A DNA stretch of 64,000 nt, taken from Macrostomum lignano (lineage: Eukaryota). This document shows positions 83-18,445 of this stretch, one piece after another. The stretch is taken from the NCBI GenBank assembly GCA_002269645.1, contig NIVC01001492.1:1-64000 (forward strand). The letters are read 5' to 3'. A program made the translations under genes and the position numbers. Positions within the stretch are counted from its first letter, which is position 1. Each line of letters starts with the position of its first letter. Under the pieces are notes generated by a model that searched no databases, was not told the origin of the DNA, and saw only the letters and a program-made list of their open reading frames with translations.

Positions 83-2636
83 TTATTTTGTCTTCGTCAG
101 TTGATTTTTGTTCATTGACATGCTCGATTGAATGTTTTTAATCGGATTGCCGCTCCATTGACTTGGGTATCGTGGGCGATGTATTTTGCTGTTTCTTGGA
201 CTTTTCAGCGTTGGGTTGTTTGTCTGGCATTGTTTTCTGATCGTCGTCACCATTTGGCGCGTGTTTGTTCTTCCTTTGCATCCATTTCTGCGCGCGTGGA
301 AGAGCTTGTAGCGGTAGAAGTGCGCCGCTACAAAAAACACAGCAGCTAGAAAGCATAGTACAATTGCAACTATAAGAAGAATGGTCGTCACGTTCGACAA
401 TGCGCCAGAGTTCGAATCAGACGAATTAACTGAGCTCGACTTCGTCTGTCTTGAACTTTTAGGATCGTCGCTTTGCAATCGATTCCAGCCTCTAGATGGA
501 AGCTCGAGCCATGCAGATTCCACAGCTAGCAGGAGCCGGAGAAGCGATTCTCGCCCAATGCTGCCCGATAAACTGCAGCCGAGGCTGCACTTTCAGCGAC
601 TAATCGTTGTCGACGACCGCTACTGGCATCCTTGTCAAATCTGTTCTCTGAATAGTAGAACAGCTGAGTGCAACGCAATCGCGCAATTGGTTCTGACGTC
701 ACGAGCTGACTGACGCTGCTTAACGTTTGCTGGGGCGGCTCGCCTCCTCTGGGCTGCAGTGTGAACAGAAAAGCGACGGAGACGCCCATGCTTGGCAGTC
801 TAGCGGCTAGATTGGTCTCTAACGGGCATCGGAACTGATGGCACTGCACAGTTTCATTCAGACAGTCGGCCAGGCAGAACGCGTTGGCTGGTGCTGGTAA
901 AACTTCTACCACTGAGAAAGCCACTAGACCGCGACCGCGAGCGTCCATTGAGTGGCAGCGTATAAGTATAGAGCCACCGGAAGTGCTGTCATTGTCTAGA
1001 CGAATCTGAGTAAAACGCAGGCTAAGCTCGATACCCCCGCCAGGAATAGACAAGAATGAGTCTCTGTGGACGTTTCCACTCCACCCAGGGAGCCATGCAG
1101 TCTTAGCTGAGTGACTGTTGAAGCAGCTGACGATTCTGACAACAAATCAAGGCCACATACCGTGCAGTTAAATGACAATGACTGGCGATCCGACCAAAGT
1201 TTCCGACTCCTTGGAGGTGGAACAAAAACTACGCTGCGAGATGGAGGTCGGTTGCCGCACAAGCTCGGTCTAGCAGCAATGCGCACGCTAAAAGCTTGCG
1301 GCGATAGTGTGGCGCTGGCTGTCCCTACAAGTGACGCCGCACTTCGACAAGTCCAAAGACCAGCTAACGGTGGCGGGCCTGGATTTCCTGGCGGTTTCCA
1401 TGGCAATAAAAGTAGCCGGTGAGGCTCTACTAGGCTTCCCAAAGCCGGATCTGGTGGTTTAACCGCCTCAGACCAGGTGCTTGCGTTTTGGCCTTGCAGC
1501 CAACTGAACTTACAATTCGGATCGTCTGCAGAGGCAGCCAGACAGAGGAAGGGGCATGGCAGAGCGTGAGTTATGGGTGGATCATCGTACAAGTCGATAC
1601 TGAGTACAGCAGGATCATGACTTATTCTTTCGGGAATAAAAGCAGAGGTCGCGACATCAGTTCTGTTTTCGATAGTGCTCACTTGAATGCGCCATCGAAG
1701 GAAAAGTCTCTGGCCACTCGGCAGTTGAGCGTCAGCGCTAATGCAGATTTTGGCTGGGCTCCAATCGCCTGTCCAGCCCAAGCGAAGACGACCGGCAAAG
1801 TAGACAGCATAGAAGGATGCCGGATCGCTTGAATTCGATTGGAGCCATGGAGACGCTACAGCTGGATTGCTGCAGTTGTAAAGCGCGTACACCGCTGTAT
1901 GCAGAGGCAAAGCGGCCACGGACAGTGTCGGAGACGGCATCAAATCGCAATCCAGTGCCACAAACTGGAGCAGGTTTTGCTGACGCTGCATGATGCGGCG
2001 GCACGGAAGGCTTGAGCTTCCTTGACTGTCAATAAGGGCACTTCTAGCCGGTCGCTCATCCCACAGTCGAACTCGAGCGGAACTCGCGACAACGGCACCA
2101 CCCAGGCGAAGGTGGCAAGCGATGACGAGAGCGCTGCGGTCCAGCGTCGGCTTAGAAAACGCCAGTGTGAGTACGGAGCCTTCTGACTTTCTGAAGACAC
2201 CTCTGGCCGGCGCAAATCCTGGTCCAAGGTCAAAGCTGAACTTCTGCTGACCGCTGCCTGAGCCCGCTTGAGCAGTCAACGTGTGCCGTCTCTGCAATCC
2301 AGTTGATGCGTCGTCGACACTCCAGCTGAGCTCAAGCTGCGATGCAGACTCGCCGTCGCCACCATCAAGCAAACACGCCAGCGCCACTGTGGACCCGTTT
2401 GCAATGACGAGAAAGGCATCATTGGTCTGGTGGGCGCTCCAAACAATGGCTTGCTTAGAGGCGGCGGCAGCTGTTAACTCTTTAGAGTTCGGTGGTCGAA
2501 ACAGCGGTAGCGACGAGTGGCGTAGCTCGCGCGGCGAGTCTGGTGACAATGTCAAAGCCGTACACGGCAGAAGGATCAGGTTGAGCTGGATGATGAAGCT
2601 AAATAGGCTGATAGGCTTGTACTCAATCTTGGACAT
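83..2636 (-). CDS. Ig-like single-pass membrane protein, apparently intronless, about 851 aa if two -1 frame breaks (near 1095 and 565) are repaired; assembly error or young pseudogene
   Basis: ORFs 996-2720, 526-1053 and 83-523 abut in successive frames. N-terminal hydrophobic signal peptide (ISLFSFIIQLNLILLPCTALT), several Ig-like C...W...C patterns (LACLL..LSWSV..IACHL; LCLAA..FSWL..LWTCR), TM helix TTILLIVAIVLCFLAAVFFVAAHFY followed by a basic stop-transfer segment. Confidence 0.65.
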
Positions 2637-3221
2637 CGCTTCAAGCTTCACGTTTGACGTTGGAATCCGGAAAAGTCTGCAGCCGCGATCGTAGCATGTT
2701 TGCGCCAGAGGCCGGCGCAACTTAACTTGTTGCCCAACTGACTGACCGCTTCTATTTTTGCTGAATACAATTAACAGGCGGCCGCAGTATTAGCATGTAT
2801 ACTTGTCGTCTTAGAATTGTTTTTGTGATCTATTGTTATAAAACACGCGATAGATCAGGTTCTACCATAGAAGTTTTTACTTGAAAAGTGACTTAGCTCG
2901 GATCTATTCATAAAACTTACAAATCTTACTTACGAGCTACAAAGCAACTTTTATGTGTGCGTGTGAGTTTACCTGTTCGATGGGTCAGCGCAACGGACCT
3001 TTACAGTAATAATAATTTAATAATTGCATGATTCTGTGCCCCCTGGCGAAACGCATTGGGCGAAATCTCCCATTGCACTGAATCCTGGGCGCATTCAAGC
3101 ACGCCAATGCTAGCTCGTAGAAAGTTATGCATGTTAAGTCTCTGTGCTTTGGGAGTCGGTTCGGGGAACTGGGGCACAAAAAAGTTATCGAATTTTCCAT
3201 TTCACACCTAACACTGCTCAC

Positions 3222-3473
3222 CTCATCTCGCTTTTTCTTCAGCACCAGCTTAAAATCGCGAATCTTTTCATCTTGTTCGCGAAATTTCTCCTTCAACTTG
3301 ACGTGGTCCTGGTACAGGCTGAGGTATTTATCCTCCAGATCTTCGCGCAACCATTTGCCGATCATCGCTTTGTCCAGCTGGTTGGCGGTGAGCGGCTGCA
3401 GCGGCGGGACGCCATTGGCGAATTTTGCAGAGTCAGGTCTGCTGCGTTTCACTGGCAGATGGCCCGAGTCCAT
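3222..3473 (-). CDS. Coding exon resembling the N-terminal coiled coil of RPGRIP1L/fantom (MKS5); possible 53-nt intron 3169-3221 and second exon 3001-3168 would give 139 aa
   Basis: GCCATGG start at 3473. MDSGHLPVK...WLREDLEDKYLSLYQDHVKLKEKFREQDEKIR resembles, from memory, RPGRIP1L GDLPVKD...[31 protein letters not shown]. Donor GAG|GTGAGC at 3222/3221; candidate acceptor TTTTTGTGCCCCAG ending 3169. Confidence 0.5.
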
Positions 3474-5657
3474 GGCTTCTGCTGCAGCAATCAACGATGC
3501 GATACGATTATAATTAAATATTTTCGTTATGTCTTATGGCCAATATATTGGCACAATTACCTGACAGAGTATCTACATGGTATTCAATCTTTAATTGAAA
3601 GAACTATTTTTAGTGCAAATTTTCAGAAATTATTCATGTCGGCTGACTATACTAACTGTTCTGTAGCAATATGACTCAAAATTAGCAACCATATAATTAA
3701 ATACATGTTTTTATTTGAAGTAAAAAACATAAATCAAGCTTTTCCACCTCTTAATTTAATCTGTAGGAATAGCTCTATGATTAAATAAATTAGACTTTTG
3801 AAATGTAGAAGCCTTTGAATTCTCCCAATTTTTCTTAAATTTGTTTGAAAAAATATGTATAAATTTTGTGGAGAAAGAACTTCAAAGGATTTAACTTTTT
3901 GAATCATATTTCTTTCAAAATGTTTTCAATCATATAACCATAATATTGCTATCTGATAAATTTGACTTTCTACTATCTATAAATATACTGCACTAAAATT
4001 GGAGATGAGAGTACTATAGAGAGCCTGCCAAGGAAAAAAGTAAAATTAAAGAGCAATCATAGTGTGGCCTAATTTGTGGCGCATGACCAAGATGGCCACA
4101 GCTCTAAGTGTCTAAATAGATGATAATAAGCCTTGGTCTATATATTTCACTTATTTCCTATTGGTAATAATTCGAGAAATAAATACCAAAAAGATGCTAT
4201 ATTATAATTGTATTATATTAGGCCCCTATATTATAGTCATTCCTTTGGCTTTAGCTTTTATTTATAGCTTGATCTATAGATATTTATTCAGCTATATCAA
4301 GCAAGTAGCCTAGGGCCTAACACAAAATAAATACCTTGACTTGGTGCATATTTATCTTAATTTTTGTATAGCATTACTAGTAGCAATATTTGGTTTCTTA
4401 ATAAACAGATACTGATAGATTTGATAGATGTAATGATAGGGAATAAATTGGCATAAACACTGAAAAAGATGAAAGTTTTTGTATGATAGGTAATTAGTTT
4501 CAAATCGATTATTACATTAGTATTTATGAATGTGATTGATTGAACATAATATTTACTATAAAAATAGCTACTATGTTGCTAATTAATAATAAAAAAAGAG
4601 AGCAGAGCCAAAGATATTCAATGTTGTGGCCATCTTGTTCTTACACCTAATTTTAATATAGCGTTTTTTGAATTCTCTACATTTCAATCTCTAACCTTCA
4701 GAATGGATATATTAAAACCTGTGCAGGAGCATATAAAATAAACAGGAATTGCAAATTTTACTCTTTTTAATATTAATTTAATATTAATATTAATTTTTAA
4801 TAGACTACTCCCTCTACTTCTACTACTTCTTTTAATATTAATAGACTAGTCAAAAGTTTAAGTAACAATCGACTAAATTCAGTCAAAGAAAGTTGCAGTA
4901 AGACACAAAACTTGTAGTGAAGAAGAAAAACTACTCTTTGTTTGGTTGTTGTACCGCCAAACAGGATCTCCTCCATGGCCCCCAGATTTTTGCAGAAGTT
5001 GACGGAAATATTCGAACAAATCTGAAAGAATTATAAAGCTGAACCAGTCATGACAATAAATAATATACCTACCTATAAAGTAGGTAAAAATTTTCTGTTG
5101 ATACTTTTATTTCCCTTTTAAATTTTAGAGTCGAAATAAGTAAGCTTTTGACTACTACATACACAAAATTATGCTTTGTTTATTTTAGCGTTTTTCAAAA
5201 GAATAATTCCGAGAAACTGTATTCAGATATTGGTTTTCGAATCTGATAATAAAATGTGTTTCAAACTGTATATTCAGTGCTTTAAATTTAACATTTTGCT
5301 TGATTTTAATTCGATTTAGCTTGATTTAGCTCGTGGATCCATGTATATATGCAAATCAAGGACCACTGTGTATGTATATAACTATTATGTAAAGTGGTCC
5401 TTGCAGGAGTTGTTATTGATATTGTGATATTTTTTTAACTAGTGGGATCTACTGTTTATAATAAACTTTTTATTGTACCTCTAGAGCAACATTCACGTAC
5501 ATATAGTCGTTTCTGACTTTTGCAACTATGGCTAAGCGCCTTTTTTATTTTTACAAAATTAGCCCGAACTTTTATGGATTTCAAAGCGTCGAAAGGCGCC
5601 CACACAAATACAAACCAAATGACGTGGCTGTCTAAAGCAGTTTGGTGCTATTTTGTT

Positions 5658-5800: not shown

Positions 5801-8800
5801 TCAGTAGTAAGTCTCCCGTTCAACAACATTCCCGGGAGACAGTCGACGAAGCAGAAGTTTCCTAATCTCGTCGAAGATAAAGATTAGGCTGCTGTGGCCG
5901 AGCGGCAGGAAGCACCAGACGAATTTCAGCGGCATCATTTTGAGCACCATGTAGGAGTAGGGCACGTAACTCAGCAACATAGCTAAGATGGTCTCGAAGA
6001 ACAAGCTGCCGGTCATGGGATGATTTCGCATGCCTGGAATTGAAAACATGTGTGTGCTTCTCTAAATGTACAGTGCAGTTGGTTGCGTGACTCAGGTTCT
6101 ACTTCATTTTCTATTCATTTCCGGAACCTGATGTGGCCTTTACTAATTTAGCAATGAAATTAGAAGCAATTTTGATGGTTAAAATTAGGAGAGGGAGAAT
6201 CTGACTCGAAAAGTCAAGCTCTGCATCAGCTTATGAATGTACATGTGTAGGCATTGTAGGCGATAATTTCTGCGTTACAGGTGGACAGACTCAGTGTTAC
6301 AGGTGACAGACTCAGTTTTACAGGTGACAGACTCAGTGTTACAGGTGACAGACTCAGTGTTGCAGGTGACAGACTCAGTGTTACAGGTGACAGACCCAGT
6401 GTTACTGGGGACTGTCTCCCTGATTACCTTATCTACATGTGCTTATACTGTATTAGTGTTACAATTATTTGCTTCATTGGTAGATTGGGATGATATACAA
6501 TTAATTATTCTTGTTACAGATGGTTGCCTTTGTGATGTTGTCAGCGTCTCGGTAGAATCTTTCTATAAGAAGATAAAAACACACTGGAAGCATATAAAAT
6601 GACTTTCCCGTTGGCTGAGAAAGTGATTAAGGTGCATATTCATAGGCCCGAGTTCCCCATAATGATACGAAACTCATTGAAGCGATAAACACGTTAATGG
6701 ATTTTCGGTTGCTTTGGCAATAATCTTCTTTGGGCGCGCTGGTTTGATGCTTCTCTGATCTTTCCGGCTGCTCATGGCATAGCAGATGATCGCATGATGC
6801 GTGTATATCGCACTTTGCTCAGCTGATCGTGTATGATTGATTGGATTGACGGGAAATTCTGCCTCAATGGCACGGACGCTATAGCATGTTTTACAAATTC
6901 TATAGTAGGAATTCTCTTGTGTACTCGTATTACGCTCGTATTAATCTATTTTGCAGACTTTATGTGTATTTGGATTTGTAGTTATTAATTCTAAGTTAAT
7001 ATTTGAGTTTGCAGTCATCACTGAGGATTCTGTGCAGTCATCATGCACTGAGGATTCTGCAGTCATCACTGAGGATTCTGTGCAGTCATCACTGAGGATT
7101 CTGTGCAGTCATCACTGAGGATTCTGTGCAGTCATCACTGAGGACTCTGTGCAGTCATCACTGAGGATTCTGTGCAGTCATCACTGAGGATTCTGTGCAA
7201 TCATCATGCACTGAGGATTCTGTGCAGTCATCATGCACTGAGGACTCTGTGCAGTCATCACTGAGGATTCTGTGCAGTCATTCTCATGCTCAATATTCTG
7301 AAAACTTACCCTGCTGGAAGACGGACAATCGCCTGGTCTTGCAGATGACTAAATCCGCCCATTGCACAATCACGATGGCAATAAAGAAGCCGGTCTGACA
7401 GGACATTTCCAGTTTTTTACGCTCGTTGTAGGTCCATTCCTGACCGAATGAGTCCTCCAGACTGTCCTCCGTACGGTTGTCCCAAGGCTCGCGCAAGAAG
7501 AACAGCCTCCTGGGTAGGAAGCCATTGTGAGCCATGATGCAGAAGTACACCAGCCAGCCTGCGGCAGCCTGCAGCATCCCAATCTGCCCGTAGGCCATGC
7601 CGATCAACCGACCGTTGACCAGCCGGTCTCGGCTCGGGTTCCTCGGCGCCCGGCTCATAATGTCGTTCTCGGCCGATTCGTAAGCGAAGCTGATCGCAGG
7701 GAACATGTCTGTGCCGAGGTCGATGCACAGGATGTGCACTGTGCCCAGGGCCAGCGGCAGGCCCAGCACAATGAAGAATATGAATGGCACCATCTCTGGC
7801 ACCTTCGAGGTGAGCGTGTACGCGATCGACTTCTTCAGATTGTCGAATATGAGACGGCCTGGGAATTTTTTAGCGGATAGCAGTTGGAAGCGAAATTGAA
7901 GTTTTTGACATCCAAAAATGGGGGCTTCTAACTCTAGAATGAATTCTTTGATGTCATTTTTGACAACCAAATATCCTTGATTTGGAAGTTTCTGACACCC
8001 AGACTGAGGCTTGCATTCATTGCATTCCCAACCAAGCAACGCAGCGTGATCTACTCTCCCAAAAAAACGTCTCGATTTCGGTTCATCGAGCTGGCCTCTC
8101 ATCCAGTTAAGCCAGTCAACTCAACTGAGCAGCTTTCGTGCCCCACCCCCCAAGAATTCAATCTCTCTGGATTGGATAAAGACAAGCGCCTCCCCCAAGC
8201 TGAGTTGAGACCGACCGACCATAGGAAAGTCCGACGGCGAGGCTGTTTTATGCAATCGAATTGCGAGAGCCGTCGCTAGAGAGGGGGACTTTTTCAATCG
8301 GGAAAACTCTCATTTCTTCCCGGCGACCACTGCCTCTGCCCCGAGCTGCGTAAATCTTACTAAATAACCGTCAGATGCAAATTTTTACTTTTGAGATTAA
8401 ATTGACTGGCTGGGCTCGGTTGGGAGCTGGGAAATATGAGCTATTCGAGAGCTCGAATATGACCGTGCCTTGATGATTTTGTGGACGTTAAATAAGATGA
8501 AATTACCCGAAGGATGTGGCAATTTAAGGTTCATCTGAAATCCTAACCGGAGCTAAATGACTTCACTAACTCTAGTCTCATAAACTCCATCTCTAATCTT
8601 CCCGGAATTCTCTTAGAATATCTCACTTACGACCTCACCTTCTTCAACTCCAACAACAATGGAAGCGAAATTGTCATCCAGCAGTATCATGTCCGCCGCC
8701 TGCTTGCTCACGTCGCTCCCAGTGATGCCCATAGCAACGCCAATGTCCGCCTTCTTCAAAGCCGGCGAATCGTTCACTCCGTCCCCAGTCACCGCCACAA

Positions 8801-11800
8801 TATTGCCCAGCTTTTGAAATGCTTCAACAATGATGAGCTTCTGCTGCGGACTGGTCCTGGCGAACACTATCTCCCGGTGTTGGCGAATGATTTCAACCAG
8901 CTCGTCCGCTGACATGTCCTTGAGCTGGCCGCCATTCACTACTCGGGCCTCGGCTTCGGCCGGGTTCACCGATTCTACGGGAACTCCGCGCTCTTTGGCC
9001 AGCGACTCGGGCGTCCGGCTGTTCGGCGAGATGATACCGACACCTCGGGCGATGGCCGCCGCCGTGATTGGATGGTCGCCGGTAACCATGACTACCTGTT
9101 TTTAGTAACAGTGGACAGTTAGGCTTTGCTTGCAAGCGTTAGGTTAAAAACAGCCCAGCAACAGCCTAGCAACAGCCTAGCAAAAAACTAACAACAGTCT
9201 AGCAACAGCCTAGCAACAACCTGACAACAGCCTAGCAACAACCTAAAAACAGCCTAGCAGCAAACTAACAACAGCCTAGCAACAGCCTAGCAAAAAACTA
9301 ACAACAGGCTAGCAGCAACCTAACAACAGTCTAGCAACAGCCTAGCAACAACCTAACAACAGCCTAGCAACAATCTAACAACAGCCTAGAAACAGCCTAG
9401 CAAACCTAACAACCTCCTAGCAACAGCCTAGCAACAGCCCAGCAGCAGCCTAGCAACAGCCTAGCAACAACCTGACAACAGCCTAGCAACAACCTAAAAA
9501 CAGCCTAGCAGCAAACTAACAACAGCCTAGCAACATCCTAGCAAAAAACTAACAACAGGCTAGCAGCAACCTAACAACAGTCTAGCAACAGCCTAGCAAC
9601 AACCTAACAACAGCCTAGCAACAACCTAACAACAGCCTAGAAACAGCCTAGCAAACCTAGCAACCTCCTAGCAACAGCCTAGCAACAGCCCAGCAGCAGC
9701 CTAGCAACAGCCTAGCAACAAACTAACAACAGGCTAGCAGAAACCTAACAACAGTCTAGCAACAGCCTAGCAACAACCTAACAATAGCCTAACAACAACC
9801 TAACAACAGCCTAGCAACAGCCCAGCAACAGCCTAGCAACAAACTAATAGTATCCCTGGATTTTACACATTTTTCTCCTTGGCATTATCTCACCTTATTG
9901 ATCTCCAAAAGTTAGCAAGGAATTTTGAAAAGCTAAAGCTACCTGTGCCTGAAATTAGCTTAAACAATTAACAAACCCTCCAAAACCAAATGTGATTTAA
10001 AAAATGAGGAAGAAGCGCAGCGCACCCGGATCCCGGCGCTCCGGCATTTCTCCACCGCGTACGGCACGGCAGCTCGTGGCGGATCGATCATGCTCATCAG
10101 GCCGACAAAGCGATAGCCGGTGAGTGGAAAGTTCACCGTCTCAGTATTGTACTTGTAGTTGTCGGGATAATCCTTGGCAGGTAGTCGAAAGTCGCAGAAG
10201 CCGAGCACTCGCTCCCCGAGGCTGCCCAAGTTTTCGTAGGCGTCCTGAAATTTTTTCTTCCACTTGGCGTCCAGAGCGACCTCGGCGCCGTCAACGAGAA
10301 TGCTCGAGCAGCGGTCCAGAATCCGCTCCGGAGCGCCCTTCATCACGCACAGGTGGCGAGCTTCGCCGTCCATTTGAACAGTTCTGTGCACAGAAACCTG
10401 CATGTGCGTACGACGAGTTTTGAATGTTTAAATCACTCGGCACGGGGTAAAATGGAAAACTTTTGTATTGGTCAGACTGGAAATCTCAGTTGGAACAATT
10501 GAATGTTACTGGGGTCATTGGAATGTAACTGGGGTCAATGAAATGTTACTGGGGTTATTGGACTGGTACAGGGGGTCATTTAAATGGTAAAGGGGTCATT
10601 GGAATGGTAAAGGGGTCATTGGAATGGTACAGGGATCATTGGAATGGCAAAAGGGTCATTGGAATGGTACAGGGGTCATTGGAATGGTTCAGGGATCATT
10701 GGAATGGTACAGGGGGTCATTAGAATGGTACAGGGGTCATTGGAATGGTACAGGGGTCATTGGAATGGTACAGGGGGTCATTGGAATGTTACTGGGGTCA
10801 TTGGAATAGTACAGGGGGTCATTGGAATGGTAAAGGGGTCATTGGAATGGTAAAGGGGTCATTGGAATGGTAAAGGGGTCATTGGAATGGTAAAGGGTCA
10901 TTGGAATGGTACAGGGGGTCATTGGAATGGTAAAGGGGTCATTGGAATGGTAAAGGGTCATTGGAATGGTACAGGGGTCATTGGAATGGTTCAGGGGTCA
11001 TTGGAATGGTACAGGGGGTCATTGGAATGGTACAGGGGTCATTGGAATGGTACAGGGGTCATTGGAATGGTACAGGGGGTCATTGGAATGTTACTGGGGT
11101 CATTGGAATAGTACAGGGGGTCATTGGAATGGTAAAGGGGTCGTTGGAATGTTACTGGGGTCATTGGAATGGTAAAGGGTCATTGGAATGGTACAGGGGT
11201 CATTGGAATGGTACAGGGGGTCATTGGAATGGTAAAGGGGTCATTGGAATGGTACAGGGGTCATTGGAATGGTACAGGGGGTCATTGGAATGGTACAGGG
11301 GGTCATTGGAATGGTAAAGGGGTCATTGGAATGGTAAAGGGTCATTGGCATGGTACAGGGGTCATAGGAATGGTACAGGGGTCATTGGAATGGTACAGGG
11401 GGTCATTTGAATGTTACTAGGGTCATTGGAATGGTACAGGGGGTCATTGGAATGTTACTGGAGTTATTGGAATGGTAAAGGGGTCATTGGAATGGTAAAG
11501 GTCATTGGCATGGTACAGGGGTCATTAGAATGGTACAGGGGGTCATTGAAATGGTACAGGGGGTCATTTGAATGTTATTGGGGTCATTCGAATGGTACAG
11601 GGGTCGTTGGAATGTTACTGGGGTCATTGGAATGGTAAAGGGTCATTGGAATGGTACAGGGGTCATTGTAATGGTACAGGGGGTCATTGGAATGGTACAG
11701 GGGTCATTGGAATAGTACAGGGGGTCATTGGAATGGTAAAGGGGTCATTGGAATGGTAAAGGGTCATTGGCATGGTACAGGGGTCATTGGAATGATACAG

Positions 11801-14800
11801 GGGGTCATTGGAATGTTACTGGGGTCATTGGAATGGTACAGGGGTCATTGGAATGGTGTCGGGTCAGAAAAATAGCAACATGGTCATTCCATAGTTATCA
11901 TGTACTTAGGAGGGTCAACGGAGTCACGGAATTTAACTTTACTGGGGTCATTGGAATGGTACAGGGGGTCCTTGGAACGTTACTGGGGTCATTGGAATCG
12001 TAAAGGGGTCATTGGAATGGTACAGGGATCATTGGAATGGTAAAGGGTCATTGGAATGATACAGGGGGTCATTGGAATGGTACAGGAGGGTCATTGGAAT
12101 GTTACTGGGGTCATTGGAGTATTACTGGGGTCATTGGAATGGTACAGGGGGGTCATTGGAATGTTACTGGGGTCTTTGGAGTATTACTGGGGTCATTGGA
12201 ATCGTAAAGGGGTCATTGGAATGGTGCAGGGATCATTGGAATGGTACAGGGGGGTCATTGGAATGGTACAGGGGGTCATTGGAATGGTACAGGGGGTCAT
12301 TGGAATGGTACAGGGGGTCATTGGAATGGTACAGGGGGGTCATTGGAATGTTACTGGGGTCATTGGAGTGTTACTGGGGTCATTGGAATGTTACTGGGGT
12401 CATTGGAGTGTTACTGGGGTCATTGAAGTGGTACAGGGGGGTCATTGGAATGTTACTGGGGTCATTGGAGTGTTACTGGGGTCATTGGAACGTTACTGGG
12501 GTCATTGGAATGGTACAGGGGTCATTGAAATGGTGGCGGGTCAGTAAAATAGCAACATGGTCATTCCAAAGGTATCATGTGTGACAGGAGGGTCAACGGA
12601 GTCACTGAAGTTTTACCCTCACCTGAAACTTGTTCTGCGAATTGAAGGGTATCTCAGCCAGTTTCGGGCATTTCAGTCTAGCGGCGGCCACCGACTTGAC
12701 TTCGCTGGGCAGGTTCAGCTCCGAGCACTTCAGCAGGGCCGTCTCGGAGGCGTCGCCGTTAACTTTACGGCGAAGCACCGGATGTGACTCCTGGTTGGCC
12801 TCAAATTTAGCCCGGCTGCAGAGCATAGCAACTCGAACTGAGAAGTTGGTTAGTTCACAAAGACTCAACTGTTTGACACAAAGACTCGGACTGTTAGACA
12901 CAAAGACTCTACTGTTAGACACAAAGACTTGGACTGTTAGACACAAATATTCTACTGTTAGACACAAAGAATCTACTGTTAGACACAAAGACTCGGACTG
13001 TTAGACACAAAGACTCTACTGTTAGACACAAAGACTTGGACTGTTAGACACAAATATTCTACTGTTAGACACAAATATTCTACTGTTAGATACAAATAAT
13101 CTACTTTTAGACACAAAGACTTGGACTGTTAGACACAAAGACTCGGAGTGTTAGACACAAAGACTTGGACTGTTAGACACAAAGACTCGGAGTGTTAGAC
13201 ACAAAGACTTGGACTGTTAGACACAAAGACTCAGAGTGTTAGACACAAAGACTCTACTGTTAGACACAAAGACTCAGAGTGTTAGACACAAAGAATCTAC
13301 TGTTAGACACAAAGAATCTACTGTTAGACACAAAGAATCTACTGTTAGACACAAGTATTCGGACTGTTAGACACAAAGAATCTACTGTTAGACACAAGGA
13401 TTCGGACTGTTAGACACAAAGAATCTACTGTTAGACACAAAGAATCTACTGTTAGACACAAGGATTCGGACTGTTAGACACAAAGACTCGGAGTGTTAGA
13501 CACAAAGACTTGGACTGTTAGACACAAAGACTCAGAGTGTTAGACACAAAGACTTGAACTGTTAGACACAAAGACTCAGAGTGTTAGACACAAAGACTCG
13601 GACTGTTAGACACAAAGACTCGGACTGTTAGACACAAAGACTCGGACTGTTAGACACAAAGACTTAGGCCCAGAAACTCATCTGCAATACATAACCTACT
13701 GTTAGAGACACAATGGACTGGTAGTCACAAATGCGACCTTTATGATCTGAGCTAATAGAACTGAAAATAAATAAATTTGGCCGCAAATCTAGCTTACACA
13801 ACGCTGAGCAAGTAACATCGCTAACATCGAATTTCTGACTTCCGCTCTGATTCTCAGTGGTGTCAACGTTGTACACTTTGCCGGAATACCACAGATGGGC
13901 AACCGTCATGCGATTCTGAGTCAGCGTACCTGCAATTAATCGGATTTAAGCGCCATCCACGTAGGTGTTTTTAAATTAAAGTGTGTACCAGTAACTAAAA
14001 GTACTCTATCTCAAGTTTCACCGGTTTTGTCGGAGCAGATAACAGAGGTTGAGCCGAGCGTTTCGACAGCTTCCAGATTCTTAACCAGACAGTTTTTCAC
14101 CGCCATCTGCTTAGCGGTCAGAGTGAGACAGAGCGTCACAGTTACCAACAAACCTTCGGGCACGTTGGCAACAATGATACCAATGAGGAACAGCACCGAC
14201 TGGATCCACTTGTAGCCAAAGGCGAATGAGATGCCAAAGAACACCAGGCCGGTGATAACTGCGACCGCCGTGATGATGCGGACAAAGTAGTCGATTTCTC
14301 TGGCAATGGGAGTCTTGCCCGTGTCCAGACCGCTGGTGAGGTTAGCGATTCGCCCCATCACTGTGTTGTCGCCGGTGAAAGTCACAACACCGATGGCCTC
14401 TCCTTCGAGTACGTTGGTGGAAAAGAAAGCCAAATTCTTGGTCTCAAGAGGATTTTCGTGTGTAAACTCGGGCGACCTGGGCTGCGGCTCGCTCTCCCCT
14501 GTGAGGCACGAGTTGTCCACCTTGAAGCTCTTGCAGCTCAGAACCCGGACGTCTGCTGGCATTCGATCGCCAGCCTGAACCCGGATGACATCGCCAACTA
14601 CCAAATCTGTGGCGGAAACATCCTGCTCGACGCCGCTTCTGATGACACGAGCGTGCTGCGGCACCATCTTCTTGAAGCTGTCCATTATGGCTTCGGATTT
14701 GGACTCCTGGTAGAATGAGAAACAGCCGGTGAGCAGGTTGACAACTGCAAGCACGATGCCTAAGATGAGCTGCTCAATTTGAGCATACTGCCCGTTTTGA

Positions 14801-15947
14801 GCTCGGTCGATGCCGTAGGCCACAATGCACAGAATGGAGGCGATCCACAGCAGGTTGGCAAACATGTTGGTCATGCAGCGCAGCAACCGCAGCCACTGAG
14901 GCGTTGTCGGCGGCGGCGTGAGCTCGTTGCTACCGTACAGTTCGAGCCTACGTTCGGCTTCGGATTCCTCTAAGCCCGATTCGGCGTCCGTGCCGAGTCG
15001 CTGGAGGGCAGAGAGAGAGTGAAGATGAGAGTTGCTTTTGTAGATAAGTTTAATAGTGAATCAAGGTTATTTGTCCAAAGCAAAAAATTCAAAATCCCCA
15101 AGCTCTATGGTCAGGTAAAAGCTGTGTTCATTAACCAGAAACGGAGCCAATAATGTAATCATGGCCAACGAACATTGTGCATGCACATTGTTACAGCAGT
15201 TCATCAGGAAACGCAAACGCTAGCTGGAACTGCAACTCCTCTTCTCCTTTAACAACATGGAGGCCGATATATATCAAGAGGTGAATAAAAATTGCAGTAA
15301 ATATTCGTGTTCAATAAACATAAAAATCAGGGGGGGGGGCAAGATGCTTAATGGATTAGCATAATGTTTTTCAATAACAGGAAGCTCTAAGCTGTAAATC
15401 CTCCCCCTAAGGTGAGGTCTTTCACCGCGTTGCTTTTGTGACGTTCTAATGCGTCTGGCAAACGGTAAGTCTACAGCTGTAGTTCCAGGAACGTTGCTTA
15501 GTTCTTTGAAAAAGGAAAAAAGCACAGAAAATCAAAAGACGGCAGCGGTTTAGACAGGCTTTAGCTAATTAAGGAATTGGAACTGGTGTACAGTACAGCT
15601 GGTCAGGCCAGTTATTTTGGGAAAAATTTTTTTTCGGAAAGATGCTTTCTCGGGTTGAACAAACGTGTTTTTTACATATACGAATAATTGAAGTTTTTTC
15701 AAACATTGGTAGGTAACAGTTTGACATGCGCAACACTTTTGTTTAAATAAAGGCTCGCAGATATATTAGCACTGAAAATTACCTGCATCAACTCCGCTAC
15801 GGGAACTTTGTGATCGTCAATTTCAATTTCTTTCTTCAAGTCGTTCAGTTCGCGATCTTTCCGCATCACATCCGTGTTGTTGATGTTGTAAGGCACATCG
15901 GCGCTGCTGTCTGCAGGAGGCCTCGGCGCCGGCCAGAGGAGTCGCAT
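5801..15947 (-). CDS. ATP1A-like: Na+/K+-ATPase alpha subunit-like P2C ATPase; exons 15947-15783, 15000-14022, 13929-13798, 12837-12623, 10397-10026, 9095-8639, 7858-7310, 6033-5801 (3102 nt, 1033 aa; start codon uncertain)
   Basis: All seven introns are GT-AG and phase-consistent. Motifs [77 protein letters not shown] and C-terminal RETYY. Confidence 0.95.
6274..6406. repeat. 21-bp minisatellite (TTACAGGTGACAGACTCAGTG), about 6 copies, in the last ATPase intron
   Basis: Direct tandem copies visible. Confidence 0.9.
7011..7281. repeat. 23-bp minisatellite (GCAGTCATCACTGAGGATTCTGT) with 27-bp variants
   Basis: About 11 tandem copies ending about 27 nt from the donor at 7309. Confidence 0.9.
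9148..9847. repeat. 11-bp-based minisatellite (AACAGCCTAGC) with a higher-order duplication of about 252 bp
   Basis: Variants AACCTCCTAG at about 9411 and 9663, and AACCTAAAAACAG at about 9240 and 9491. Confidence 0.9.
10500..12530. repeat. 20-21-bp minisatellite (GGGGTCATTGGAATGGTACA), about 2 kb, intronic
   Basis: About 95 degenerate tandem copies; source of the many [13 protein letters not shown] pseudo-ORFs. Confidence 0.95.
12855..13663. repeat. 21-22-bp minisatellite (CTGTTAGACACAAAGACTCGGA)
   Basis: About 37 copies filling most of ATPase intron 13797-12838. Confidence 0.95.
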
Positions 15948-16744
15948 CCACCAGCTGCGAATGTTTCGAAAATCGATGATTGACGTCAGTGACGGCCGGC
16001 TGTCGTTGACCCTGACCGGCTGTCTTCGTTGGCGAGCGTAGCGATACTCGCGAAGAATTACACTGCGCGCAGCCAAAGGCGCTCGAAAACCCTGATGGTC
16101 TGGCATATTCTTTTAAATATTCAGGAGATTTGATGTGTCGCAATTTCAGAGCTGAGTCTGGAGTCTGGCTTGTTGAATTGAAACCCGGGTAAGTTGACGA
16201 CTTGCTTCATAAATGCCTCAATGCCATAGACTAAAGCTCACGAGATAATTAAAGAATGTACTAATGCCATTCTTTCGGTTTTGAAGAATTGAATGATTTT
16301 TAAAAGTACATATTGGCTTTGACTTCGCAGTACTTACTTTTAAATACACGCAAACCCCAGCCTTAGCACACTAATTCGCGTAATTATTACTTGCGACGAA
16401 CTGCATCGATTCGTTGGTTCGTTACTAAATCGAGTTGATTCAATACTCTCAGCATTCCTCTCCCTCCAACTGCTCTGCTTCCGTCTGTTCTCAGATTGAG
16501 TAAAGACGAGATCGGTAAATCAGTCCGTTTCGATTAGCTTTAGCAGGCATGATGAAGAGACAAGAATCCAGTTGCGGCGTCTGCATGAAAATCCATAATT
16601 ATTGAGTACCAAGGCATGTTTCATGGTTTAGAAATAGGAAATGTTTTGACTGCAATTTTTAATGCGCTTGTAGATTGCGCTTCTATCTCAGCGTGTTCTG
16701 CTGCAATTGTGAGGCAGGGAGTGAGGGAGAGGGTAAGCTTGATA

Positions 16745-17554: not shown

Positions 17555-17900
17555 AAAGGAGGGAGAGCCAGGGAAAGAAACTCAATAAGCGCAAATCCGT
17601 CTGCACAAAGCGCAGTATTTGACAGAGAAATCTGATCGCCAAGGGATAAGCGGATTTCGCATGGGCTCGCATCGGTAGCAGACAGACCACTTGGAACTTG
17701 AGCTTCCTTAATGAGCAGATTGTCCAGTACAGAGGCTAGTTGTGTAATCTGTGTGCAGCATCGGAGAGAGTTAAGAGTGCAATGGCCAGACATTAGTTTT
17801 ATGAGCTAGTATGATGATCGACGATACCCTGCCATCAGCTTAGTCAGCAGATGGAATGGGTTACCGCATTTACCGCCAGCGCTGCAAGTTAAGCGACCAG

Positions 17901-18445
17901 GGTGCTGGCGCCCCTGGTGCTGGCGCCCCTGGTGCTAAAGCCCCTGGTGCTGGCGCCCCTGGTGCTGGCGCCCCTGGTGCTGGCGCCCCTGGTGCTGGCG
18001 CCCCTGGTGCTGGCGCCCCTGGTGCTGGCGCCCCTGGTGCTGGCGCCCCTGGTGCTGGCGCCCCTGGTGCTGGCGCCCCTGGTGCTGGCGCCCCTGGTGC
18101 TGGCGCCCCTGGTGCTGGCGCCCCTGGTGCTGGCGCCCCTGGTGCTAAAGCCCCTGGTGCTGGCGCCCCTGGTGCTGGCGCCCCTGGTGCTAAAGCCCCT
18201 GGTGCTGGCGCCCCTGGTGCTGGCGCCCCTGGTGCTGGCGCCCCTGGTGCTGGCGCCCCTGGTGCTGGCACCCCTGGTGCTGGCGCCCCTGGTGCTGGCG
18301 CCCCTGGTGCTGGCACCCCTGGTGCTAAAGCCCCTGGTGCTAAAGCCCCTGGTGCTAAAGCCCCTTGGTGCTAAGGTTCCTGGGTGCTAAAGCCCCTTGG
18401 TGCTAAGGTTCCTGAGTGCTAAAGCCCCTTGGTGCTAAAGCCCCT
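17901..18445. repeat. 15-bp GC-rich minisatellite (GGTGCTGGCGCCCCT; variant GGTGCTAAAGCCCCT)
   Basis: About 35 copies. Confidence 0.95.

Follow-up and report, generated by a model that had tools for sequence, protein, structure and literature searches.

The minus strand of a 64,000-nucleotide (nt) stretch of the Macrostomum lignano genome (contig NIVC01001492.1, positions 1 to 64,000, assembly GCA_002269645.1; hereafter, the window) carries a K-type Na,K-ATPase α-subunit gene, BOX15_Mlig006173g1 (Mlig006173g1 in what follows). It has 8 exons and encodes a protein of 1086 amino acids (aa) in which a lysine of membrane helix M5 replaces an ion-coordinating asparagine. Mlig006173g1 is a single-Lys sodium pump of the K785 type, a class that was already established. 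New here are the existence of a K-type pump in Platyhelminthes, its single-Lys architecture combined with unique changes in M6 and in the M1-M2 loop, and a trematode K-type paralogue with Met in place of Asn324, which is intronless in at least three of the six species concerned. From the combined analysis we judge it rather probable that M. lignano has here a second Na,K-ATPase α gene which is transcribed and functional, and that its product would transport a reduced number of ions per ATP.

Around positions 7805-7803 the minus strand reads ACG CTC ACC TCG AAG GTG CCA GAG, which translates as TLTSKVPE. The AAG codon (7803..7805) specifies a Lys that is number 845 in the annotated protein and 765 in a 1006-aa model; it corresponds, by alignment, to Asn776 of pig α1 and Asn785 of Xenopus. 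Residue numbers refer to pig α1 (PDB 3WGU, mature numbering) except where Xenopus is mentioned. In the M5 alignment with pig α1, TLTSNIPEITPF, the Lys stands opposite Asn776, so codon reading and alignment both agree with the first-pass annotation of this DNA, which had pointed out a Lys at that position. Asn776 was invariant in the canonical Na,K-ATPase α sequences that we gathered (205/205), and 776 is the only position altered in Mlig006173g1 among the coordinating residues of sites I, II and III. The first reading was also right about every residue that it listed as retained (E327, Y771, S775, E779, D804, D808, Q923, D926 and the C-terminal YY); N324, T807 and E954 are kept as well.

Outside the coordinating residues, Mlig006173g1 departs from canonical pumps in M6 and in the M1-M2 extracellular loop. 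A CAC codon (7734..7736, minus strand) places His at the position of Thr799, 5 residues ahead of Asp804; within our set this His occurred only in Mlig006173g1, while 202 of 204 canonical sequences had Thr, which bears out an earlier description of T799H as non-canonical. Past Asp808, a TTC codon (7701..7703, minus strand) gives Phe at the position of Val810, a state in common only with the trematode K-type paralogues described below. The M1-M2 loop (14770..14808, minus strand) is divergent, with a 1-aa insertion and without Asp121 and Asn122, each of which is found in 205/205 canonical pumps; Mlig006173g1 reads Ile/Glu instead, and has Asp at position 111. Because Asp121 and Asn122 are lost, this loop predicts that the pump would be insensitive to cardiotonic steroids such as ouabain. 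The first-pass annotation had also flagged E953F as non-canonical, which turned out to be an artefact of the vertebrate reference: Phe is the usual invertebrate state at position 953 (200/205 canonical sequences, almost all from invertebrates, with the canonical M. lignano paralogue Mlig021528 among them), and Glu953 is found in just 5/205, the vertebrate reference among these. We likewise rejected E953F and N935L as changes co-varying with the M5 Lys, given Phe953 in 200/205 and Leu935 in 51/205 canonical sequences.

The gene structure was modelled independently of the annotation, from reading frames and junctions. All introns in this model are GT..AG, and the product of its 8 exons is 100% identical to the GenBank protein PAA67335.1. 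The whole coding span occupies 5801..16106 on the minus strand, to which all exon coordinates below refer, with the stop codon at 5803-5801. Exon 1 (15783..16106, GT donor at 15782-15781) holds the annotated Met, extends the N terminus by 80 aa and reaches into the Cation_ATPase_N region. Exon 2 (14022..15000) encodes M1-M4, the A domain with its TGES motif and DKTG, and contains the AAC codon of the retained Asn324 (14166-14164) and the codons of Glu327 (14157-14155) and of the phosphorylated Asp369 (14031-14029). It is followed by exon 3 (13798..13929), exon 4 (12623..12837, N domain), exon 5 (10026..10397, N/P domain with KGAPE and DPPR) and exon 6 (8639..9095, P domain). Exon 7 (7310..7858) spans M5-M8 and holds every ion-site residue of M5, M6 and M8, and exon 8 (5801..6033) encodes M9-M10 (SLFFET, with Glu954 kept), the C-terminal ERETYY and the stop codon. 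The introns are packed with minisatellites, namely a 20-nt unit repeated 100 times (10501-12534), a 22-nt unit repeated 37 times (12856-13664), an 11-nt unit repeated 63 times (9149-9841), a 23-nt unit repeated 11 times (7010-7281) and a 21-nt unit repeated 6.6 times (6274-6412); these yield long spurious plus-strand open reading frames (ORFs; GHWNGTG..., DRLSVTG...) and many off-diagonal BLAST matches between gene copies.

Mlig006173g1 is a member of the P2C family of P-type ATPases and is nearer to Na,K-ATPase than to H,K-ATPase. Its fold is not in doubt, given an identity of about 63% to solved pumps. The protein matched the P2C profile TIGR01106 (Na,K/H,K-ATPase α) with 1575.3 bits, against a cut-off of 946.1, over positions 2-997 of 997, and the Pfam domains Cation_ATPase_N, E1-E2_ATPase, Cation_ATPase, Hydrolase and Cation_ATPase_C were all found. 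The catalytic motifs of P-type ATPases are complete in the translated model, including TGES and DKTGT with the phosphorylated Asp. It scored 1393 bits with pig α1 versus 1199 bits with the gastric H,K-ATPase, and the marks of the Na,K type (Y771, T807, Q923, D926, E954, Ser at 775 and the C-terminal YY) are all kept. In the M7-M8 loop, the motif that contacts the β subunit is SFGQ (DSFGQEWTY), whereas pig α1 and the trematode K-type pumps have SYGQ. M. lignano also possesses a canonical paralogue, Mlig021528, which has TSN in M5 and is 63% identical to Mlig006173g1. The two genes have two intron positions in common (at pig residues 372 and 606) as well as F953 and E954; Mlig021528 differs by its Asn776, Thr799, Val810 and D121/N122.

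The assembly contains three copies of the gene, g1 in the window, g3 (locus L001) and g2 (locus L002). It derives from the DV1 line, which carries large duplicated blocks, and is based on PacBio reads (PMC5730564). The Lys codon and the 18 nt flanking it are the same in L001 and L002, and TSK also occurs in two UniRef models with different accessions (P0002 and P0003), which disposes of the base error envisaged at the outset as an explanation for the AAG. Over 3261 coding bases, the copies differ by 13 distinct exon substitutions, of which 11 are synonymous and 2 non-synonymous (V259I and Q29P, the latter in the N-terminal extension). This corresponds to ω values (non-synonymous relative to synonymous substitution rates) among copies of 0.04-0.08, for 767 synonymous and 2491 non-synonymous sites; 2/13 non-synonymous changes compare with a neutral expectation of 76% (binomial estimate ~6e-6). 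Divergence between g1 and g2 amounts to ~1.35% in introns and 0.30% in exons. Since the copies differ mostly at synonymous sites, purifying selection keeps them alike. In addition, the GenBank annotation of NIVC00000000 rests exclusively on transcript assemblies (StringTie/TACO and a de novo transcriptome; PMC5730564). As our splice model, built independently, agrees with this transcript-derived annotation, one Mlig006173 copy or more must be transcribed and spliced in the way we modelled. The gene is accordingly neither untranscribed nor evolving neutrally, two circumstances that the first reading had thought damaging to its proposal. A separate observation concerns exon 7. Copies g1 and g3 have 9 coding differences, and 6 of these, all synonymous, are crowded into 127 nt of that exon (7740-7614); 3 of the 6 also occur in g2. 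The cluster has the appearance of a tract of gene conversion or recombination involving the copies.

To our knowledge, Lys-bearing pumps are the sole known natural Na,K-ATPases with an altered ion count per ATP. The reference case is the α2KK pump of Artemia franciscana described by Artigas et al. in 2023, which has Lys at Xenopus Asn333 and Asn785, equivalent to pig Asn324 and Asn776 (PMC10756188). That paper reports a cryo-EM structure (8K1L) in which the M5 Lys lies within the ion cavity and is directed to site II, as well as a double-Lys Xenopus mimic that transports 2 Na+ per Rb+, that is, 2Na:1K. Xenopus α1 with N785K alone is functional and electrogenic, its K0.5 rising from 0.21 to 2.66 mM for K+ and from 3.3 to 9.3 mM for Na+, with Hill coefficients of 1.14 for K+ and 1.3 for Na+. 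In molecular dynamics simulations, Lys785 acts as a cation surrogate and the two-K+ E2 state of α1K785 is unstable. The M4 Lys of α2KK rescues K+ affinity. The same source mentions α2KK in Daphnia and K785-bearing α1 subisoforms of cichlids, salmonids and zebrafish that are induced in fresh water. It also states that the H,K-ATPase Lys, at the neighbouring Ser784 (pig Ser775), blocks site I, that some site III contributors are absent from that enzyme, and that S784K abolishes Rb+ uptake in the Xenopus Na,K-ATPase (PMC10756188). The gastric H,K-ATPase carries out electroneutral 1H:1K exchange (PMC8481561), and built-in Lys or Arg counter-ions substitute for counter-transport in other P-type ATPases (PMC10654040).

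The M. lignano protein resembles α2KK in its M5 Lys and in keeping E327, S775, E779, D804, D808, Y771, Q923, D926, E954 and the C-terminal ETYY, and both are extra paralogues beside canonical pumps. They differ in M4, where α2KK has its second Lys at Asn324 whereas the Macrostomum pump keeps the Asn (IVANVPEGL), and in the M6-M7 loop, which has a 2-aa deletion in α2KK; for their part T799H, V810F and the altered M1-M2 loop belong to the Macrostomum pump. The score of Mlig006173g1 with 8K1L (1347 bits) is below that with pig α1 (1393 bits), which suggests that the gene is not an orthologue of α2KK; crustacean-like environmental TSK fragments, by contrast, have 8K1L as their best match. With the fish K785 forms it has in common a single Lys at the same M5 position and a place next to canonical pumps as a paralogue; the fish forms are linked to extreme external salinity. 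The fish genes, however, are vertebrate-specific duplicates. The salmonid K785 form is said, in work by Jorgensen dating from 2008, to be also altered at Asp926 and Glu954 of site III, both of which are intact in the Macrostomum gene. Compared with the H,K-ATPases (ATP4A and ATP12A), there is likeness in the P2C fold and in a tethered M5 Lys, which in the Macrostomum pump would likewise occupy a cation site. Nevertheless, the H,K-ATPase Lys occupies the Ser775 position, whereas the Macrostomum pump keeps Ser775 and site III. The initial proposal, an intact pump whose tethered cation is shifted by one residue relative to the Lys of H,K-ATPase, holds as far as motifs, sites and published precedent are concerned, but the class it pointed to had been described before. 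Our literature search, which covered open-access papers only and is weak evidence for that reason, returned no earlier description of flatworm Lys-bearing pumps or of Mlig006173.

A search with the Clonorchis protein as query recovered K-type paralogues from six plagiorchiid trematodes, namely Clonorchis, Opisthorchis, two Paragonimus species, Fasciola gigantica and Echinostoma. All six combine TSKIPE with Met at Asn324. These proteins are only 56-58% identical to the Macrostomum protein and, unlike it, keep Thr799 and D121/N122. The Lys codon is AAA in Opisthorchis and Paragonimus, and neighbouring codons differ synonymously. Four trematode loci were fetched: L009, 501-3512 (Opisthorchis); L010, 501-3503 (Paragonimus); L012, 3001-6096 (Fasciola gigantica); and L013, 3001-6169 (Echinostoma). 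The gene has a single exon in Opisthorchis, Paragonimus and Fasciola gigantica, and in Echinostoma the span of the model exceeds the coding length by ~170 nt. In Opisthorchis, Paragonimus and Fasciola it adjoins, or lies antisense within, a CASK-like gene (Pkinase/L27/PDZ/SH3/GuK). Their single-exon structure and common CASK-like setting suggest that the trematode K-type genes stem from one old retroposition. No schistosome or cestode K-type protein was found among the top matches, which is weak evidence of absence. An older Clonorchis model (P0005, GAA48524.1, 1160 aa) duplicates ~150 aa of the N/P domain relative to the 1003-aa P0245, and this repeat is probably an annotation or assembly artefact.

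As to how the Macrostomum pump might work, the ε-amino group of the M5 Lys would sit in the cavity of sites I and II, standing for one K+ in the E2 state and for one Na+ in E1. Since site III is intact, the pump should still be Na+-selective and electrogenic. Each ATP would move fewer ions, with 2 Na+ outward and 1 K+ inward as the most likely count, at the price of lower apparent affinities for both K+ and Na+. Moving fewer charges per ATP would permit the gradient to be steeper or the membrane potential more negative, which would fit salt and water regulation in the intertidal zone; M. lignano is described as intertidal and has been the subject of salt-stress work (PMC8406910). As it has no M4 Lys, the Macrostomum pump probably either works with a K0.5 in the millimolar range or makes up for the loss by other means, and we speculate that T799H and V810F in M6 are candidates for such compensation, with Met324 as the counterpart in flukes. 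The retention of the Lys at the 776 position in six trematode species speaks for this reading and indicates long-term viability of this residue in flatworms. Several points weigh against it. The 2Na:1K ratio was measured only for double-Lys pumps, and Macrostomum keeps Asn324 while trematodes have Met; in the α2KK study, a single Lys costs the Xenopus pump ~13-fold in K+ affinity and Lys-bearing pumps are expressed less (PMC10756188). Moreover, with 98% identity or more between the three copies, the transcript evidence is not assignable to any one of them. Exon 7 of g2 also lacks 1 nt in each of two short homopolymers (equivalent to ~7635 and ~7629 of the window), which leads to a truncated GenBank protein, PAA87915.1; g3 has substitutions at both sites. 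As these deletions fall in short homopolymers and the UniRef model P0002, which has V259I like g2, reads through the region, the g2 frameshift is likely an assembly error rather than real.

Two alternatives would leave the sequence as we describe it and change its functional meaning. The canonical 3Na:2K stoichiometry might be kept, with the Lys tuning affinities or voltage dependence and its side chain swinging out during occlusion. The retained Asn324, which means that the M4 partner of the measured 2:1 pump is missing, is compatible with this, as is the integrity of site III and of the remaining residues of sites I and II. Yet the simulations of α1K785, with their unstable two-K+ E2 state and a Lys that takes the place of a cation, run counter to it, and the Hill coefficients of the single mutant (K+ 1.14, Na+ 1.3) point to fewer cooperating ions (PMC10756188), so that we regard an unchanged stoichiometry as unlikely. 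Even less plausible is a change of substrate, in which the Lys, His799 and the altered M1-M2 loop combined would result, for example, in electroneutral 1:1 exchange, in transport of H+ or NH4+, or in an Na+ extrusion that needs no K+ because the Lys is its built-in counter-ion. Built-in Lys or Arg counter-ions elsewhere among P-type ATPases (PMC10654040), the neighbouring Lys that serves 1H:1K exchange in H,K-ATPases, the restriction of T799H to Mlig006173g1 and the loss of D121/N122 at the outer mouth would all be in keeping with such a shift. On the other hand, Lys at exactly this position preserved Na+ selectivity and electrogenic transport, and it was S784K that abolished Rb+ uptake (PMC10756188); in addition, Ser775 and the site III residues Y771, T807, Q923, D926 and E954 are canonical, and the Na,K-ATPase scores exceed those of H,K-ATPase. 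Finally, the Lys could be devoid of biological meaning, as a codon error or as part of a decaying duplicate, an idea to which the highly duplicated, PacBio-based DV1 assembly, the frameshift of g2 and the long branch of Mlig006173g1 (~64% identical to every other pump) lend something. It is already largely refuted, and we consider it very improbable, in view of the same Lys codon in three contigs, TSK in two further UniRef models, an open frame across 8 exons with canonical splice sites, ω values of 0.04-0.08, intact motifs and a transcript-derived model.

A distinct question is whether the Lys of Macrostomum and that of trematodes have one origin or two. The first-pass annotation had raised the prospect of a TSK paralogue clade in flatworms; TSK is indeed found in six trematodes, whose sequences group with Macrostomum in neighbour-joining (NJ) trees, but the common origin that such a clade implies stands at roughly even odds. 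The chances are only slightly below even that the Macrostomum Lys arose independently, with no flatworm-wide K-type lineage and an apparent clade produced by long-branch attraction. A single third-position change converts Asn into Lys, and this has recurred in branchiopods and in several fish lineages. Three trematode loci are single-exon and CASK-like-associated, as opposed to a Macrostomum gene with 7 introns, three of whose positions are common to canonical genes (pig 372, 483 and 606) and none to trematode K-type genes. There are no indels common to the K-type genes of the two groups, and the M4 partner residue is Asn in Macrostomum and Met in trematodes. When each long branch was placed alone in the NJ tree, its position was unstable (17-25% with flatworm canonical pumps, 33-40% with vertebrates), for which reason phylogeny cannot settle the choice between one and two origins. 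Against independent origins, the group of Macrostomum and trematode K-type sequences had an NJ bootstrap of 200/200, and of 84-100/100 with gamma-corrected distances. Both groups also have in common 12 rare residue states (present in ≤2% of the 205 canonical sequences), versus 0-5 in controls, including N776K, V810F, G950S (in 5/6 trematodes) and several in cytoplasmic domains. A more far-reaching scenario, which we put forward as doubtful, is that of an old rhabditophoran lineage of single-Lys pumps, intron-bearing in Macrostomum and turned into a CASK-locus retrogene in plagiorchiid flukes. K+ affinity would be maintained through Met324 in flukes or His799/Phe810 in Macrostomum, and a reduced, possibly different stoichiometry would serve osmoregulation.

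Lys-bearing pumps are also present, though rare, in environmental eukaryote data (metagenomes and metatranscriptomes). Fragments of pumps with TSKIPE were found as proteins (P0156, P0157, P0163 and P0242) and at four loci (L003, L005, L006 and L007), and the best match of P0156 was the Artemia α2KK structure 8K1L. When the C-terminal halves of the Macrostomum and Clonorchis proteins served as a profile query, the search returned fragments only, without listing the queries themselves, and its yield consisted of four crustacean-like TSKIPE sequences. Scanning the DNA of metagenome contigs for the pattern AYTLTSK[IV]PE gave five loci, 4 of them P2C exons with TSKIPE and none with the flatworm signature DMFPAIS; the fifth (L004) was discarded as a chance match in an unrelated ORF.

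In the rest of the window, a SYDE-like RhoGAP gene has exons on the plus strand at 38993-40057 and 44466-45065 (C2_SYDE, 3.7e-14), its RhoGAP domain being split over two ORFs. Long ORFs made of simple repeats and a poly-Gln-rich ORF occur at 17856-18374, 24995-25990, 27192-27845, 29550-30800 and 46455-48956, with no Pfam match where tested; all these ORFs are probably repeat DNA and not genes, which fits the repeat-rich genome of M. lignano. Downstream of the pump gene, the minus-strand region 996-3494 contains ORFs of 574 and 169 aa without Pfam match, and the gene called downstream of the pump in copy g3 (L001) carries a C2-C2_1 domain.

Lys-bearing pumps have so far been tied to brine crustaceans and to the gills of freshwater fish. 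The flatworm pump opens no new category; it adds a third animal lineage to this one, in an organism, M. lignano, that is genetically tractable and for which transgenesis is established, and with a conserved relative in six flukes that include liver and lung flukes. This lineage makes it possible to ask whether a single M5 Lys suffices to lower the stoichiometry, what offsets the lost K+ affinity when there is no M4 Lys, and whether Lys-bearing pumps are a general answer of animals to extreme or fluctuating salinity. Should the doubtful scenario of an old rhabditophoran lineage prove true, the same kind of pump would serve animals in intertidal sand as well as larval stages in fresh water, it would represent a third mechanistically distinct solution among Lys-bearing pumps, and liver and lung flukes would possess a parasite-specific pump variant.

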